Shown here one piece after another: positions 15,462 through 56,401 of a stretch of 64,000 nt of DNA (positions are counted from its first letter, which is position 1; every line of letters begins with the position of its first letter). The position numbers and the translations under genes were made by a program. The stretch lies in sequence record PP942979.1; one strand, 5' to 3'. A model generated the notes under the pieces. The model saw nothing but the letters and a program-made list of their open reading frames with translations, made no database searches and was not told the origin of the DNA.

Positions 15462-15720
15462 CTCTATCCTCTAAAACAAATTGTAGTGTGCCCTGTATAT
15501 TTACAGCATTGAGGCGTTTGCCGGATGCTGCAATCAGGCCATTCAGAACGCCAACGAAGTCAGCGCTGTAACAGTCAGGTGCTATCTGGTGAACATAAAT
15601 ATCATCAGGCACGTCACCCGGGTTAAGCTGCCAAGCAGTACGCAAGGCAGCACCCATGAATGCCGGACGTTCTACCAGATGCTTGTTCAGGAATGAACAT
15701 ACATCTTCGGCCGTCATCAT
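15427..15720 (-). CDS. Hypothetical protein
   Basis: 97 aa between polymerase and clamp, overlapping both. Confidence 0.6.
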   Translation of the reverse strand: MMTAEDVCSFLNKHLVERPAFMGAALRTAWQLNPGDVPDDIYVHQIAPDCYSADFVGVLNGLIAASGKRLNAVNIQGTLQFVLEDRDEDLSIAEEPR

Positions 15721-18887: not shown

Positions 18888-18945
18888 CTAGTCCTATCAG
18901 AGTGTGTAACGCAAATCGATGGCTGTTATTTACAGATTTAGAAAT

Positions 18946-29967: not shown

Positions 29968-30009
29968 CTCCTGAATGTTTCGACAATATGAAATTAGTAA
30001 ACTTAGGGT

Positions 30010-35607: not shown

Positions 35608-35655
35608 CAATACAATCCACGAGTTTCTTTGACTGCTATTTACAGAATCAAAATG

Positions 35656-37630: not shown

Positions 37631-38140
37631 TCAGGAGCGTCTATTGAATTTTAGCCAGTCTTTCCACCAATACGTAACGGGCTTGTTTTGCTTGAGCGCG
37701 TAGTCAATACAGTTCTGTGTTCCTGATGGTGCACCACAACACAATGAAATCAGACGATCTGTTTGATCAACCATGTAGTGATTGCGTTTGTTGAGTGCGA
37801 AGCCTGCTTGACCGTCCATGTGAAGCCAGTCTTCTTTTGATGTGACTATTCTTACTTCGTGGCTTTTATTAAGAAGACCGTCAAGTTCAATCACGCTACT
37901 GATTGGCCAGCGAGCATTGAACCCAGGATAAGGTAGACAGGAAACAACTTTATGTCCTTGGGATATTGCGGCAGTCGCTACAGCCATATCAAAGCCAAGA
38001 GCGCACCCGACGTAGATGATTGCATCGTCGTCCAGTGCGAGTAATCTGCGATGTGCGAAAGTATACAGGCGATCTTTTGCCTTAGGGCTGAATCCACCCA
38101 ACGATTGTGGGCGATGACCAGTGAAGGATATCTTTTCCAT
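37631..38140 (-). CDS. SLOG-superfamily protein (YspA/DUF1273-like)
   Basis: ISFTGHRP, GCALGFD, RNHYMVD, SGTQNCIDYA. Confidence 0.8.
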   Translation of the reverse strand: MEKISFTGHRPQSLGGFSPKAKDRLYTFAHRRLLALDDDAIIYVGCALGFDMAVATAAISQGHKVVSCLPYPGFNARWPISSVIELDGLLNKSHEVRIVTSKEDWLHMDGQAGFALNKRNHYMVDQTDRLISLCCGAPSGTQNCIDYALKQNKPVTYWWKDWLKFNRRS

Positions 38141-38179
38141 ACAGAGTATTTACAGAAGCACGTCCGTGTGCCGATACAA

Positions 38180-41890: not shown

Positions 41891-41925
41891 AATAAAGCCC
41901 TCTGTTAGACAGACTAAAATTAGCG

Positions 41926-42768: not shown

Positions 42769-42835
42769 AGTTTCTACCTCAGGTAGGTTGATTACAAGGT
42801 ACTGCGCGTTGAGGTAAAATTAGTTCCAAGATCGA

Positions 42836-48301: not shown

Positions 48302-49585
48302 TCACTTCTTCTTTTTCTTTTTCTTCTTAGGCTCGTCGTCTTCTTCGTCGTCGTTGCCTAAATCAACAGTCAACTTACCGCTGTAGATGTTCGCCATCAC
48401 TTCGGTAATTCCAGTCTCCAGCATAATATCTGCCGGCACCGAAGTTGAGTTGAATGCCACTTCTGCATCAGCCAGAGCTTTCTGCAAATACACCAAACTG
48501 ACCAGATTGACTTTGATGTTGTCTTTCTTGATCATGTTCATGAACATCTTGAGGCCCGCAGACTGCCACTTGTTCGTTTCGGCGTAATGCCCCAACACAC
48601 CATGAATAATCCAACGAGCTTTCGCTACGATTGCACGTGGGTTGTTTGCTTCCCGCAGGAACTGAATAACGCCTATCAGGTCCATACTGAGATAAGCACC
48701 GATCATCTGAACGGCTTTCGCTTCCATGTCGATTTCTGGATCAGCAGCAGCCAGTTCAGCAACGAGGTTCTTATCAAAGTCTTCACCACCACGAACAGAG
48801 GCGTAGATGTTTTGCAGCATGGTGATTGCACCACGCATTTGTCCACCAGCGTACTCTGCTACCTGATGAAGTGCCGCTTCTGCTTTATCACGCGCCTTGT
48901 CTTTCTTCGGCAGGATATCAAGCTGACCACTGATCTCAATCAGGCGTTTATGAATCACGTCAGTTGCAATCGGTCTGATCGGCAGTTGCGTCATACGACT
49001 GATCATCGTGCCTTTCATCTTCTCAGGGTTCGTTGTTACGAAGATGAAGACTACGTGCGCTGGGGGCTGTTCGGTAATCTTGAGCAGCTTGGATTCAGCA
49101 GCACTGGACATGAGGTGCGATTCGTCGAAGATGAACACACGACGTTTGAACATCGGGCTTAACGGGGCCGAGTCAACAATCTTCTGTGAGCCCTCAACTT
49201 TACCTGCATCGCCGCCCATATCGAACTCTTGTTCGTCAGGATGTGCGCCACGGTCGTGCATCTCACACGAACGACACTTACCGCAGGCAGAGAACGAATC
49301 ACAGTTGATGTACTTCGCTACCAGACGTGCGAACGTTGTCTTGCCTGAACCGAGATGACCTGTGATGATCATTGTTGACGGAATCGTTTTCGACTTCTGC
49401 CAACCTTTCATGATCTTCACGATGTGGTCTTGACCAACGTAATCTTCGATACGCTTCGGTCGGAACTGATCTGCAAAGTTAACCGTGGTCAACTCAACAG
49501 ACTCGGAAGAACCGCTTTTCTTTTTCGATGGCTTATCGTCACCGAACGAACGCGACTTCTTCTTTTTCTTTTCTTCTTTCGCCAT
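48302..49585 (-). CDS. dnaX: Clamp-loader ATPase, DnaX gamma-like
   Basis: GHLGSGKT, C4 zinc module, VFIFDESH, SR motif, GQMRGAITML. Confidence 0.9.
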   Translation of the reverse strand: MAKEEKKKKKSRSFGDDKPSKKKSGSSESVELTTVNFADQFRPKRIEDYVGQDHIVKIMKGWQKSKTIPSTMIITGHLGSGKTTFARLVAKYINCDSFSACGKCRSCEMHDRGAHPDEQEFDMGGDAGKVEGSQKIVDSAPLSPMFKRRVFIFDESHLMSSAAESKLLKITEQPPAHVVFIFVTTNPEKMKGTMISRMTQLPIRPIATDVIHKRLIEISGQLDILPKKDKARDKAEAALHQVAEYAGGQMRGAITMLQNIYASVRGGEDFDKNLVAELAAADPEIDMEAKAVQMIGAYLSMDLIGVIQFLREANNPRAIVAKARWIIHGVLGHYAETNKWQSAGLKMFMNMIKKDNIKVNLVSLVYLQKALADAEVAFNSTSVPADIMLETGITEVMANIYSGKLTVDLGNDDEEDDEPKKKKKKKK

Positions 49586-49649
49586 TTTACTTCGCCCTTT
49601 ATTTTGATGCGTTACACCAGTAATTTACAGATTTTAGACAAAAAGAAAG

Positions 49650-49724: not shown

Positions 49725-49922
49725 TTAGGCAAAGCACATTTCCCAGCGTGGTACAACGCGGAAGAACTGCTTAAAGTTGGACGGCGGATTCTTCTTGATT
49801 GATTCAAGTTTCTGTTCCACTACGTCATAATCTTTTATGCCACTCTCTACGGTGTGAGTGGTGAATGTACCGTCAGCCTGAATCAAATCGGCGACAACAC
49901 GGTAGCTAGGTTTACGAAGCAT
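49725..49922 (-). CDS. Hypothetical protein
   Basis: 65 aa, AGGAG SD, CTGTAAAC upstream. Confidence 0.65.
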   Translation of the reverse strand: MLRKPSYRVVADLIQADGTFTTHTVESGIKDYDVVEQKLESIKKNPPSNFKQFFRVVPRWEMCFA

Positions 49923-50015
49923 CTATTCTCCTGTGTAAAAATTTTCTCGTTCTTCTGAATTATGTTTACAGTTTACTGCGAGTAGTCACACAAGGATAAA
50001 GTCAGACAAATCTTA

Positions 50016-50344
50016 AACTCCAATAGGCTCTCAATCAAGAACATATTGGAGTCCACCCTCGCCAGATGACGGTCTAGCCAGGGCTTTCTCCCCGTGTCTT
50101 TCAATTGCACCGACACGGTAGCGCTCGCGGTCTTACGCTCTCTGTGGCTTGCGAACATATCGGCAGGTAGCAGGGTTCGCAGCCTAGAGCAGCCGCTTTC
50201 GGCCATTAGCGATAACGCGGTGTTACGCTAGTTGGCCTGACTCTGTGGCCGAGTCTGTACAAAAAAGAGTTCGGCCTATCCCCAAATTCGGCAAAAGAAA
50301 CAGGCCGAACTAAACAGTCAGCGCAAACTCCATATGCACTGTTT
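50016..50344 (-). ncRNA. Candidate structured non-coding RNA, family not recognised
   Basis: Eight consecutive stem domains cover the gap; G.U pairs favour minus strand; CTAATTT promoter motif at 50356-50362. Confidence 0.65.
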
Positions 50345-50390
50345 TGTACTGTTACAAATTAGAAACATCCTGCAATAAATCAGACAATTC

Positions 50391-50978
50391 TTAGTCTAAC
50401 ATTGGAATAAGATTTTGCAGGAAATGCTCACGATCAAACGACGAAATTCTGTGCGGATGATCGATGTGCATGTTCCAGGGTTTGTTGAATAACAGAACGC
50501 TACGAGGCAGCACCAGTTGCTCACCGACGCGAGTGAACTTGTCACGCACGGCAGTAACAGGATTATCATCGACAAGGACGTAGGTACCTTCGCCGTGTAC
50601 TTCGTTCAGGTACGCAATCTTGTCAGGATGCTGGCGGCTATCCAAAACATGAATGTGATCGAACAATGACAAGTGCTTCTCCAAAGACTTGCGCGTGTTG
50701 CGTTCGCCTTTAGGGTGATAGCCTCGATGCGTACAAATGCCCGCACTGAAACCCTCACGCACCAACATTGCAACTGTCTGGATGAAGTAGTCACGCATGT
50801 TGGCTTCAAGCATGAAACGGCCGTCTTCCAACATATCAACGAAAGGCTCAAGCCCATTCTCTGGCGTGATGTAGGAATCGGTACCTGGATAGATTCCCCA
50901 GTTCATCAGATAGCACAACATAAAGTTATGCGTGTCGAATGCTGTGTCGTCCATGTCGAAGAAAATCTTCTTAATCAT
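50391..50978 (-). CDS. HAD-family 5'(3')-nucleotidase-like protein
   Basis: IFFDMDDT, CTHR, VLVDDNP, LLFNKPWN. Confidence 0.8.
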   Translation of the reverse strand: MIKKIFFDMDDTAFDTHNFMLCYLMNWGIYPGTDSYITPENGLEPFVDMLEDGRFMLEANMRDYFIQTVAMLVREGFSAGICTHRGYHPKGERNTRKSLEKHLSLFDHIHVLDSRQHPDKIAYLNEVHGEGTYVLVDDNPVTAVRDKFTRVGEQLVLPRSVLLFNKPWNMHIDHPHRISSFDREHFLQNLIPMLD

Positions 50979-54132: not shown

Positions 54133-55749
54133 TCACTCCGAGAATATCTTTTTGTCAGAAAACTTCTTGAGCACAAACTCGGCACAATCGCTCGTCACGC
54201 TGTCTCCATCAACGCAGAGTAGCGCACCGTCATGCTCAAGGGAATACACACCCTTGACGTTCGGACAATTAAGAATAGCATCGAACAAATACAAACTCTC
54301 CCAGCCAGACAGCATGTGGTTGAGAATGCGTTTGTCAATCTTCTTGCCTGTGTCGTCAGGATCAGGATCGTAGTTAGATCCTGTCGGGCACTGGAGTACC
54401 CCATACTCGGGTCTTCGTGCATTTTTATTCTTGCGGAACTTAGACCGATACACGTTAAGCAATTCTTTGATCGCAAGATACAGAGGAGTCATCCTCGTGT
54501 TCCAGTCTAAGATTTCCTCTTTCACTCTCGAAGCTGGTACGAAGCGAGCTAACTCTTTATAGACGTTGCTGTACTTCGTTGGTTCAAGTTGACCTGCCGA
54601 AAAAATTGTACCATACAAACAAACCTTGGCTGCGCGTCTGTCAAGTTTCATAATGCGGCTAATGTCGTCAACAGAACTAATCTGGTCGAACATCGCACAC
54701 GCAATACCGTAAGCGTCAAACTCCCTACGCAACACGTTGAACTGGCTGGACTTCATATCCCAGTTAGTGCCAATCGTGTAGCACTGCTCCTTCAAGTCCG
54801 AAGGTAAGTTCTGGAACCCACCACCGACCTCGAACAATCGCCCGCCAATCTGAGACAGCCTATACTTCGGCCAGTAGCGAACGACAAGAGGTTTCTCGCT
54901 AACGATCTGAACAGGACCCGACACTATGGTATCGAGTAACGTTTTCACCTGCAGGTATTGCTTCTTCGCCTTGTGATTAGCAATCAACGATTTGTCTTCT
55001 AAATAAGCAAGTATAGGGTCGATGTTCACTTCATTAGGCATCAGCTTATCAAGTACCTGTCGATAAAGAGCACGGCCACTAAGCACCTTAGAGTTTCCTC
55101 TGTCTCGGTTGCGATCAAGTGAACTAAGATCATGCGCAGGGCGCTTGAACGGTAGCTTAGAATTTTTCTGAATCTGTGACCACACCGTCACACCATAATC
55201 CTCCCTTAAAATTTTAAGAGGACTATAGAAACGAATGCGGTACAAAATATCGTAATGCGACTGCGGCTTAAAGTGCCCGTACATCCCGTCTAAGATTTCA
55301 GGACGCATCCTAAACTCTCGACTAAGGCCCTTTTCTTTGCTGTAAGGCTTCGTTTCAAATACGTTAGCCATCAACCACTCAAGGGACCTACCGTACGTGC
55401 CTTTTTTAGACTTGGCATATCGCCCGACAGCAACATTATCGCCACCACGCTTGTGACCGAAGACCATTGGCAGTTTTTCTTTTCCTAACGAGCTTGGAAA
55501 CGGCACCCAGACCCGTCCAAACTTCTTTTTCTTGTGTTTACGTGCAGGATAAAGACTGCATTGAAGAATGTGCCAGAAGAATAAGTTCAATTGAGCACGA
55601 AACGCAGATCGCTCGCTCTCGGGGCCGTCGTAGGGACAGGCATCAAGAACATGTTTTCGCACCCACAAAACAACTTCCTTCTCCTGGTAAGAGGGGTTCG
55701 TGATTAATACTGGCCCCTGACCGGAAACGATTCGTTTTTTCATGTTCAC
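54133..55749 (-). CDS. Divergent family-A-like polymerase without exonuclease (TV-Pol-like)
   Basis: GGRLF...FQNLP, motif A DMKSSQ, motif B RRAAKVCLYG, NHMLSG, motif C EHDG. Confidence 0.7.
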   Translation of the reverse strand: MNMKKRIVSGQGPVLITNPSYQEKEVVLWVRKHVLDACPYDGPESERSAFRAQLNLFFWHILQCSLYPARKHKKKKFGRVWVPFPSSLGKEKLPMVFGHKRGGDNVAVGRYAKSKKGTYGRSLEWLMANVFETKPYSKEKGLSREFRMRPEILDGMYGHFKPQSHYDILYRIRFYSPLKILREDYGVTVWSQIQKNSKLPFKRPAHDLSSLDRNRDRGNSKVLSGRALYRQVLDKLMPNEVNIDPILAYLEDKSLIANHKAKKQYLQVKTLLDTIVSGPVQIVSEKPLVVRYWPKYRLSQIGGRLFEVGGGFQNLPSDLKEQCYTIGTNWDMKSSQFNVLRREFDAYGIACAMFDQISSVDDISRIMKLDRRAAKVCLYGTIFSAGQLEPTKYSNVYKELARFVPASRVKEEILDWNTRMTPLYLAIKELLNVYRSKFRKNKNARRPEYGVLQCPTGSNYDPDPDDTGKKIDKRILNHMLSGWESLYLFDAILNCPNVKGVYSLEHDGALLCVDGDSVTSDCAEFVLKKFSDKKIFSE

Positions 55750-55789
55750 ATCATGATTACCTGATTTTTCTATCGTTTCTTTACAGTTT

Positions 55790-56400
55790 CAGACAACTCT
55801 TAACCCGAAAGCTACTACAGCGCTAATGCTAGGAAGGCTAAGGCTACAGCAGGCTTGCTACAACGCTCATGGCATGCTTCAACAATAGTTCTACAGGTAC
55901 ATCTTTAGGCGGCACGTTTCAGAGACATAGAAAATAAAGAAACCATGTCCTCAGCAGCCCGAACTATAGTCCATACGCACTATAGGTAGCGATCTAGCGG
56001 AAATCCCTAGGTCGTCTAAACCGTGTAAATTTTCCGTCAAAAACAGTCCGTTTTTTAACCAAACGCCCTTTTTGACTCTGAAAATGAGGAAAATCCGAGA
56101 AAAATCAAGGACTTTCTCCTCTTTTCTACCTCGGTGAAACTCAAATTGCATCATCAGGTTGAGTATTTGAGATATCGGCATGTACATGCAGCTTCATCGC
56201 ACTATAGTCACGCGGAATTAGCGCCTCAGTCCCAAAACCCTCGCGCTAGGAGCTATAACCCTGACGTAGAACCGTGTGCTGAGGGCCCAAAACATCAAAC
56301 CGTCAATAGACTGGTTATTTGGTACCAATACAGAGGATTCTTAATCCTCACACGTAGACGTCAAAAGGAGATGCTCCTAGCGCGATTCCATAGGAAACTG
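55790..56400. other. Origin-like non-coding region
   Basis: ~600 bp with no credible gene; GCTA/CTACAG/ACTATAG repeats, phased A/T tracts, palindromes, 13-bp inverted repeat. Confidence 0.5.
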
Positions 56401-56401
56401 G

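Follow-up and report, generated by a model that had tools for sequence, protein, structure and literature searches.

The genome of Erwinia phage phB78 (PP942979.1), an Alexandravirus and jumbo phage of 261.8 kb, contains a 468-nt gap without annotation, and this locus raises the question of what, if anything, is encoded there. The gap lies at positions 49923-50390 of the window, i.e., the whole stretch of 64,000 nucleotides analysed here, whose position 1 is position 124001 of the record, and the surrounding genes are all on the minus strand. A preliminary description of this DNA had proposed a fully structured intergenic RNA of ~330 nt, read from the minus strand behind a late-type promoter. 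We find that the minus strand of the gap encodes a structured RNA that had escaped annotation and represents a family, new at that level, in jumbo phages of Erwinia and Dickeya, and that its core fold of ~170-245 nt, comprising a closing helix with a GUAAGA internal loop and the P2 hairpin (Pc/GUAAGA/P2), a pseudoknot, a GGGRG junction and the hairpins H4 and H5, is kept by compensatory evolution. Gap positions are numbered g1-g468 along the RNA strand, the window coordinate being 50391 - g.

The minus strand of 50016-50362 folds with a free energy of - 140.9 kcal/mol, compared with a mean of - 108.4 kcal/mol for shuffled sequences (z - 6.03), and none of 100 shuffles equalled it. The plus strand of the same interval gave a z of - 3.34, the 246-nt core alone a z of - 4.79, with a minimum-free-energy fold that gives back the core helices, and the homologue in Dickeya phage JA11 a z of - 4.7. 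In a hand alignment of 17 representatives, the helix cells that are not Watson-Crick pairs comprise ~50 G.U and 2 A.C, in keeping with the earlier remark that non-canonical pairs are mostly G.U on this strand; because G.U cells far exceed A.C cells, the minus strand is the RNA strand. The view of a single ~330-nt unit did not survive in the same way: the RNA is structured, but in phB78 it consists of two modules, a leader hairpin with a terminator and then a 245-nt core, and the leader module is missing from JA11-type phages, which have the core only.

Compensatory change was assessed on several alignments. On A4, an unbiased MAFFT alignment of nine representatives covering the 3' half of the RNA, 96.9% of cells are paired, compared with 33-50% when the 3' partners are slid by 1-3 columns; both sides have changed in 15 of 36 pairs, and the observed values were reached by none of 500 shuffles. 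An alignment of 15 sequences guided by a covariance model had 94.3% of cells paired and 20 of 32 pairs compensated, while the hand alignment, which was fitted to the structure and is to be read beside the unbiased A4 figures, had canonical pairs in 97.8% of 678 cells. Helix by helix, the hand alignment shows changes on both sides in 5/7 pairs of Pc, 4/5 of P2o, 5/6 and 6/7 of the pseudoknot stems S1 and S2, 7/7 of the outer part of H4 and 7/15 of H5. Within clade 1 (Alexandra-, Y3- and SNUABM_25-type phages), RNAalifold on a 22-sequence alignment gave 24 pairs with changes on both sides. An all-lineage MAFFT alignment misplaces the pseudoknot and was excluded from pair counts.

The compensatory changes that the preliminary description had named as a check were found, and seven of its eight listed stem sets were reproduced. 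Covariation supports the GGCCA...TGGCC arm, the nested GCGG/GCTCT/GGCT/GCGAAC domain, CCGTGTC/GACACGG, GCCCT.GCTAGA/TCTGGC.AGGGT and GACTCCAATA/TATTGGAGTT, as well as the 11-bp stem followed by U6, which covaries and extends to 14-15 bp; the GACTC/GAGTC stem also returned but is invariant, so that covariation speaks neither for nor against it. The first stem of that list (50344-50338/50318-50312) fell, with three of its seven pairs breaking whenever they vary and none compensated. It is overlapped and replaced by a hairpin shifted by 3 nt (50341-50335/50325-50319), which pairs in 100% of cells and in which three pairs have changes on both sides. The list had also lacked an H-type pseudoknot, formed where a helix of 4-6 bp (50124-50121/50110-50107) interleaves with CCGTGTC/GACACGG.

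This pseudoknot covaries in every lineage, its two interleaved helices both being maintained by compensatory change. On A4, S1 and S2 are each 100% paired, with both sides changed in 2/4 and 5/7 pairs, respectively. The helices differ widely in sequence: S1 and S2 read GCGC/GUGC and CCGUGUC/GACACGG in phB78, ACGU/ACGU and CCUGCAC/GUGCAGG in Y3, GGCGCG/CGCGCC and CCCUC/GAGGG in Yoloswag, GGUGCG/CGCACU and CCCGC/GCGGG in JA11, GGUGUG/CGCACC and CCCAC/GUGGG in the uncultured contig L091, and AGUGCC/GGCACU and CACGC/GCGUG in the contig L135. The loops of the phB78 pseudoknot are 2, 1 and 8 nt long, the third being A-rich, and across the family loops 1, 2 and 3 measure 1-6, 1-3 and 7-10 nt (the last again A-rich), lengths predicted to be able to span the grooves.

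The remaining core elements show the same combination of changing stems and constant loops. HA occurs in all independent clade-1 folds and its stem is invariant in clade 1, while in Yoloswag and SNUABM_5 it is longer (ACUCUCAC/GUGAGAGU). HB was recovered by independent folding of ten representatives whose stems differ, e.g., UAGCG/CGCUA versus CAGUGU/ACACUG in Y3. Between Pc and P2 lies an asymmetric internal loop in which CU stands opposite GUAAGA (50132-50137), and UAAGAC is invariant across all lineages. The purine junction reads GGGRG in all lineages if the end of S2 is counted. On A4, H4 is 95.4% paired, with both sides changed in 6 of 12 pairs, and its loop reads CCGUCA in clade 1 and CCGACA in the JA11 type. 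The outer 7 bp of H5 are identical in 17/17 representatives, and its inner pairs are compensated, giving the 7 of 15 positions noted above. The invariant single-stranded elements are accordingly UAAGAC, GGGRG and the CCGNCA loops, and the invariant double-stranded element is the outer stem of H5. Two further pairings were rejected: a long-range 8-bp pairing of the Yoloswag 5' region with a site ~50 nt past H5, which is lost in SNUABM_5 and the contig L116, and a complementarity between the H4 loop and the terminator (GGUUCC/GGAACC in JA11 and L135), considered as an antiterminator, which is not kept in L091.

Two sets of repeats were observed at the RNA. A 14-nt internal repeat, AGCGUAA(G/C)ACCGCG, occurs on the minus strand at 50126-50139 and 50216-50229, with a likeness extending to ~27 nt; one copy is placed in HB and the other across the GUAAGA loop and the closing helix, which suggests either an ancient internal duplication or two sites for one factor. 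In pEp_SNUABM_52, the HB loop carries a recent 10-nt tandem duplication (GUAACACCGC; L017 around 880-900). The two copies of a 17-nt direct repeat (UAAGAWUUGUCUGA...; 88% identity, spacing 378 nt) bracket the RNA unit; both are kept in clade 1 and absent from Yoloswag and JA11 types, and the repeat may represent a site for a regulator, a signal for processing or the scar of a recombination event.

The RNA is found in 46, 6 and 4 GenBank phage records (~56, from Erwinia and Dickeya phages) and in several uncultured contigs, and the family spans at least seven genus-level lineages of Erwinia and Dickeya jumbo phages. The region is carried at 70-100% identity by 46 of the records. The loci of Yoloswag, pEa_SNUABM_5 and JA11 were found by synteny, using the upstream HAD-type phosphatase-like gene (hereafter HAD gene) and the downstream 65-aa open reading frame (ORF), and the uncultured contigs L091/L134, L116/L131 and L135 together with the JA29-like locus L132 by pattern scans and a HAD-profile scan of IMG/VR. 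Distant relatives (Yoloswag, SNUABM_5, JA11, L091, L116 and L135 types) keep the core despite very different sequence. A covariance model built from nine clade-1 sequences (R1) finds every member, with scores from 137 bits down to 25.8 bits (E about 1e-4 to 1e-5); its match in phB78 spans 50015-50135 at 137 bits, H5 being its 3' end, and it had no other match in the window or in decoy loci. Compared with pEa_SNUABM_32, nucleotide identity is 91-95% in the gap and 80% in the HAD gene, so the gap is conserved at least as well as the neighbouring protein gene.

Known families did not account for the RNA. The Rfam 15 covariance models, those for 6S RNA, riboswitches, known ribozymes, GOLLD, ROOL and HEARO among them, gave no match at gathering scores over the whole window; in 49800-50500 the best match had an E of 0.7 and 19 bits against a threshold of 48, and six relatives from five lineages gave none at E up to 1. 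The Infernal comparison with Rfam that had been proposed at the outset therefore met no family, and the earlier judgement that the RNA is not a tRNA or tmRNA (ARAGORN), nor RNase P or an intron (Rfam), held, with no tRNA or tmRNA genes in the window. A group I intron was rejected also because the HAD ORF is complete, being alignable through its final residue (195) with the JA11 and YerA41 homologues, and because the 65-aa ORF, which JA11 types lack, comes with a Shine-Dalgarno sequence of its own; there was no Intron_gpI match. A type III antitoxin-like RNA (ToxI or pseudo-ToxI, with ~36-nt arrays) was set aside, as the locus has no tandem repeats, only the 14-nt internal and 17-nt flanking pairs, and no toxin-like neighbour was found.

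The limits of the family were sought more widely. PaBG and Lu11 belong to the same wider group as the phB78-type phages (PMC7412058), and their syntenic site has no HAD gene, no gap and no R1 match. The corresponding gap of Alcaligenes phage Afa-NA1 was rejected as a member, with a 13-bit match only and iteron-like repeats instead; in this 482-nt gap upstream of the clamp loader, at the position equivalent to the RNA, we observed ~8 iteron-like direct repeats (variants of CAACTGATACATGAG and CAACTTAAATGAG; L262:1950-2330), an arrangement suggestive of an origin or a regulator array. No member turned up in two scans of 185,579 bacterial and archaeal genomes. A metagenome pattern scan was flooded by chance matches, and among the matches listed R1 confirmed 1 of 80 loci, a contig already known; the first IMG/VR pattern was discarded, since it mostly matched an unrelated coding motif of another phage family, and a search for related loci starting from the clamp loader returned low-complexity peptide patterns and added nothing. 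A 2023 catalogue of viral RNA structures (PMC10690425) may hold fragments of the RNA.

In phB78 and most relatives the core is preceded by the leader module, which in clade 1, Yoloswag and SNUABM_5 sits between a CTAATTT motif and the core. Hairpin 1 is 100% paired in 22 sequences, with both sides changed in 3 of 7 pairs, and in Yoloswag and SNUABM_5 its stem differs while the GGAGU loop is kept. The terminator hairpin has 13 pairs, is 96.9% paired and shows six pairs changed on both sides; combined, the module is 98% paired with 9 of 20 pairs compensated. A conserved stable hairpin with a U-run 3' of the stem (U6 in phB78, U6-U12 among relatives, behind a 2-nt UC spacer) has the features of an intrinsic terminator as predicted from sequence. 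Short (~85 nt) and long (~335 nt) forms are plausible because the internal U-run follows a covarying hairpin, a possibility that the preliminary description had raised. For the ~85-nt product, the CTAATTT motif, hairpin 1 and the terminator stand in an order that would fit a base-pairing small RNA (50-300 nt). The length of the U-run (50261-50266) differs from 6 to 12 between near-identical phages (L007, L008, L014, L015, L021 and L022), and read-through could be tuned by such polymorphism in homopolymer length. Complements of the conserved loops, sought as possible antisense targets, occurred at close to chance frequency in the 64-kb phage window, and the single complement at a start codon (15709-15718) was unconvincing.

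Two classes of promoter-like motif occur in the window. The CTAATTT motif (class B) is present in 11 copies against 5.5 expected, ten of them on the gene strand and mostly intergenic; it precedes the endolysin gene (41917-41923), the head-tail-connector operon and others, with further copies at 29991-29997 and 42817-42823, and the tail-sheath gene is preceded by a variant, GATAATTT. The class A core, CTGTAAAT, is present in 11 copies against 2 expected and precedes both DNA polymerase genes, the clamp loader, the recombination endonuclease and the HNH gene; copies of CTGTAAAT(A) were noted at 18928-18935, 35638-35645 and 49623-49630. The Lu11 record labels the same motif as CTGTAAAT a 'putative middle/late promoter'. 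Ahead of most promoter-like motifs stands a GC-hairpin terminator whose loop is UUCG and whose tail reads CATTTCT or CGTTTCT. A sigma-70-family factor is among the proteins that phages of this group encode themselves (PMC7412058), and the two classes may correspond to one or more phage-encoded sigma factors. Of the late-type promoter originally assigned to the RNA, the conserved promoter-like motif upstream stands; CTAATTT is probably a promoter, and 'late' is a reasonable reading of the endolysin and structural-region genes that share it.

The boundaries of the unit differ between lineages. In clade 1 the downstream boundary is a degenerate CTGTAAAC motif ahead of the 65-aa ORF. In JA11, L091 and L135 the upstream motif (TCTAATTTATAA) shares bases with the HAD stop codon and leads directly into the RNA; ~45 nt past H5 comes a strong GC hairpin with U7-U9, behind which stand AATCTGTAAAT and, next, the clamp loader. 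In Yoloswag and pEa_SNUABM_5, an extra ORF of 107-119 aa lies directly after the RNA (L082:916-1239 and L083:894-1253, minus strand), with a weak likeness to Rz-like spanins and coiled-coil proteins (E about 1e-3); if the Rz-like ORF is real, it would fit late expression of the RNA's transcription unit. The features of the phB78 locus are collected in Table 1.

Table 1. Features of the RNA locus and its flanks in the phB78 window, in order along the RNA strand (g, gap numbering)
Feature	Window position	Strand	Remarks
HAD-type phosphatase-like gene, 195 aa	50391-50978	minus	upstream of gap; phrog_16292 + phrog_415, DxDxT motif
17-nt direct repeat, left copy, UAAGAAUUGUCUGAUUU	50377-50393	minus	at HAD stop codon
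CTAATTT promoter-like motif (class B; extended TTCTAATTTGTAAC)	50356..50362	minus	conserved at the same place in all relatives
Leader hairpin 1	50319..50341 (g50-56/66-72)	minus	7-bp CAGUGCA/UGCGCUG; conserved loop UAnGGAGUU
Intrinsic-terminator-like hairpin	50261..50310 (g81-95/108-122)	minus	14-15 bp, then UC + U6
Hairpin HA, GACUC/GAGUC	50239..50255 (g136-140/148-152)	minus	present in all independent clade-1 folds
Hairpin HB	50201..50237 (g154-190)	minus	conserved loop (U)AACACCGCG(U)
Closing helix Pc, GCGG/CCGC, and P2 hairpin	50127..50196 (Pc g195-198/261-264)	minus	P2 loop GCUACCUGCCG
H-type pseudoknot, S1 + S2	50092..50124	minus	S1 50124-50121/50110-50107 (g267-270/281-284); S2 50118-50112/50098-50092 (g273-279/293-299); A-rich loop 3
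Purine junction GGAGAAA	50085..50091	minus	invariant or nearly so in alignments A1, A2 and A4
Hairpin H4, 12 bp	50055..50084 (g307-318/325-336)	minus	invariant loop GACCGUCAUC
Hairpin H5	50015..50054 (g337-349/364-376)	minus	outer ACUCCAA/UUGGAGU, covarying inner stem, variable loop
17-nt direct repeat, right copy, UAAGAUUUGUCUGACUU	49999-50015	minus	repeat family D2
Degenerate class A promoter-like motif, CTGTAAACATAATTCA	49957..49972	minus	invariant in 22 relatives; before 65-aa ORF
65-aa ORF	49725-49922	minus	downstream of gap; own Shine-Dalgarno sequence
Clamp loader gene	48302-49585	minus	downstream of 65-aa ORF

Taken together, we lean, with a little better than even confidence, towards a stand-alone structured RNA gene, probably late, which would act in trans, most likely by binding a protein, and would be gated by a 5' attenuator. 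A stand-alone RNA is preferred over a leader of the next gene mainly because the arrangement in JA11, L091 and L135 is that of a self-contained RNA gene. As judged from the signals described above, the RNA would be transcribed from its own phage promoter of the CTAATTT class, probably late in infection. In JA11-type phages the transcript would end at its own strong terminator, ahead of the separate clamp-loader promoter, whereas in phB78 and most relatives the default product of the promoter would be the ~85-nt form, with the full RNA of ~335 nt made by read-through only; the leader hairpin with its conserved GGAGU loop and the intrinsic terminator would thus form an attenuator gating the core RNA. 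The weakest step is the next one, in which a partner, most likely a protein of phage or host, would recognise the invariant loops, the junctions and the H5 stem. On this view the RNA would either belong to a ribonucleoprotein or serve as a decoy for a protein, acting in trans and late in infection. A bolder version, which we hold to be possible but doubtful, is that it is an essential RNA subunit of a new late jumbo-phage ribonucleoprotein or ribozyme, either capsid- or packaging-associated or a decoy against a host RNA-binding defence or regulatory protein, turned on by regulated read-through of the leader terminator.

Several points weigh against the stand-alone, protein-binding RNA gene. 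Transcription, timing and the ends of the RNA are all read from sequence signals, and 'late' depends on the genes sharing the motif within one 64-kb window. The leader terminator was missed by a simple terminator scan, as its 12-nt loop exceeds 8 nt and a 2-nt spacer precedes the U-run. The clade-1 core has neither its own promoter nor a clear terminator, H5 with UUUAAGAUUU being a weak candidate, and in Yoloswag and SNUABM_5 neither a terminator nor a promoter is visible between the RNA and the ORF behind it, so that in these two phages the RNA could be a 5' leader. A partner protein was not found: no RNA-binding gene accompanies the RNA throughout, since JA11-type phages lack the 65-aa ORF, and loop complements are not enriched at start codons in the window. 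Shuffle controls overstate significance, since the sequences are related; the slid controls and compensation in multiple lineages are the stronger evidence. Finally, a ribozyme or a ligand sensor would be compatible with the evidence.

That the core is a cis-acting leader or riboswitch, sensing a ligand or protein and controlling the downstream gene or genes (the 65-aa ORF and clamp loader in phB78, a membrane coiled-coil ORF in Yoloswag and SNUABM_5), seems unlikely. Like riboswitch aptamers, the core has a complex fold that includes a pseudoknot and junction nucleotides that never vary, which would suit such a role, as would the position upstream of same-strand genes and the hairpin-plus-terminator module, which resembles an expression platform; in Yoloswag and SNUABM_5 the missing signals noted above would leave the RNA in one unit with the next ORF, but they are the only members where this is so. 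The terminator lies 5', not 3', of the core, JA11, L091 and L135 have a strong terminator followed by a separate CTGTAAAT clamp-loader promoter, clade 1 has a conserved promoter-like motif between the RNA and the 65-aa ORF, the downstream gene varies by lineage, and no Rfam riboswitch matched. Somewhat less probable again is an element of the 3' untranslated region (3'-UTR) of the HAD-phosphatase operon, which would serve to stabilise the upstream mRNA, to process it or to release a small RNA from the 3'-UTR, the U-run hairpin being the operon terminator. The RNA always stands directly after the HAD gene, the leader terminator is the first terminator past that gene in clade 1, and JA11-type HAD transcripts would traverse the RNA up to the terminator behind it. 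Such an element would not explain why every lineage has a promoter-like motif between the HAD coding sequence (or its last codons) and the RNA, nor why the 245-nt core of clade 1 lies beyond the terminator, and a stabiliser needs no five-helix pseudoknotted fold with invariant loops.

The setting of the locus inside a cluster of replication genes (clamp loader, exonuclease, helicase and polymerases) recalls transcripts such as ColE1 RNA II and those of T4 oriF and oriG, and the RNA might accordingly form an R-loop or primer near the replication genes, a reading to which a G-run (GGGGAG) in all lineages and the iteron-like repeats of Afa-NA1 at the same position would lend some weight. We regard this as improbable, given that the locus has no iterons, AT-rich unwinding element or DnaA-box-like repeats, that there is no GC-skew inflection near 50 kb, that PaBG and Lu11 lack the element at the syntenic locus, and that it is the pairing of the RNA that is under selection, at a distance from any evident DNA site. 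That the RNA is a ribozyme, whether self-cleaving or of another kind, with the conserved junctions as active site, is very improbable: pseudoknotted RNAs of >200 nt with invariant unpaired nucleotides are sometimes catalytic and the 5' end of the core, past the terminator, could arise by processing, but no known ribozyme family matched at E up to 1 and no conserved cleavage-site motif was recognised. Hardly credible at all is that the locus is no RNA, i.e., a DNA-level element, a missed small protein gene or a chance structure. The phB78 gap does hold a 77-aa ORF (49973-50206, minus strand), and one small ORF is annotated in the gap of each of Yoloswag and SNUABM_5, yet neither is conserved; gap ORFs of at least 35 aa vary in strand, frame and length among the phages, leaving no conserved ORF, and the indels are not multiples of three, while the excess of G.U over A.C cells, the compensatory changes in six helices and scores far above the slid controls all speak for an RNA fold.

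Among known systems, the RNA would work most like the stand-alone structured phage RNAs, i.e., phi29 pRNA, T4 RNAs C and D, GOLLD and ROOL. The pRNA of phi29 is a phage-encoded stand-alone structured RNA of 120-174+ nt, with helices and conserved loops, that acts in trans in a protein machine, and as such it offers a precedent for the virion or packaging role first suggested for the phB78 RNA. The differences are that no pRNA match was seen in an Rfam search up to E 10 (the library presumed to include pRNA), that phB78 is a 262-kb myovirus with a headful-type terminase while phi29 is a 19-kb podovirus, and that pRNA lacks an H-type pseudoknot of the phB78 kind; by inspection, the conserved loops (ACACCGCG, GCUACCUGCCG, GACCGUCAUC and GGAGU) have no complementary conserved partner loop for a pRNA-like loop-loop ring. 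The stable RNAs C and D of T4 (species 1 and 2) are structured non-tRNA RNAs of ~120-140 nt with no assigned function, and like the phB78 RNA they lie among other genes of a large myovirus; however, they are in, and processed from, a tRNA cluster, whereas the phB78 window is without tRNA genes, and a relationship in sequence would not be expected. For the leader, comparison can be made with the lambda pR'-tR' '6S' transcript with Q antitermination and the HK022 put RNA, in which a short default transcript becomes longer by read-through. The likeness lies in a late-type promoter with an intrinsic terminator <100 nt on and a conserved hairpin just upstream of the terminator, but read-through would yield a structured non-coding RNA in phB78 rather than a late operon as in lambda, no Q-like or put-like element was identified in phB78, and JA11 types dispense with the module.

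Comparative analysis of intergenic regions has also produced GOLLD, ROOL and a catalogue of viral candidate structures, which have complex pseudoknotted folds and are often from phages (bioRxiv 10.1101/2024.12.08.627333; PMC10690425); that catalogue of 2023 comprises 10,006 viral candidates, with motifs of 29-151 nt (PMC10690425). The phB78 RNA resembles GOLLD and ROOL in being an orphan complex fold with a pseudoknot that emerged from such an analysis, but it is unrelated to them in sequence and fold (no Rfam match), is smaller (~170-335 nt) and is confined to one clade of Erwinia and Dickeya jumbo phages.

Other observations concern annotation in and around the window. The gap has no annotation in the 22 clade-1 relatives fetched or in JA11. 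The small 'hypothetical protein' genes Yoloswag gp204 (L082:1452-1616) and pEa_SNUABM_5 gp214 (L083:1464-1589) fall within the region homologous to the RNA, one being read from the opposite strand, and probably reflect mis-annotation of the RNA as coding sequence. Elsewhere, an unannotated 169-aa ORF (MEKISFTGHRPQSLGG...; 37631-38140, minus strand) fills most of a 607-nt 'gap', with CTGTAAAT just upstream (38148-38155); its GHRP motif presumably recalls SLOG/DUF1273-type proteins. In the 934-nt annotated gap at 55468-56401, an ORF at 54133-55749 (GTG start, 538 aa) would lengthen SHZ78_208 by 94 residues upstream, and in the ~650 nt that are then left (55750-56401) there is just a 78-aa ORF and no Rfam match at E up to 1.

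For annotation, these results mean that at least 56 GenBank records leave the RNA unannotated or carry doubtful small ORFs in its place, and the analysis supplies candidate middle and late promoter motifs for the phage group. To our knowledge, very few stand-alone structured phage RNAs have a known job, phi29 pRNA being the classic case, and large orphan pseudoknotted RNAs have repeatedly proved to be ribozymes, sensors or ribonucleoprotein scaffolds. The present RNA is well defined, with clear boundaries, strong covariation, promoter-like and terminator signals of its own and two natural versions, with and without the leader attenuator. As it is present in cultivable Erwinia amylovora and Dickeya solani phages studied for biocontrol, its function is directly testable.

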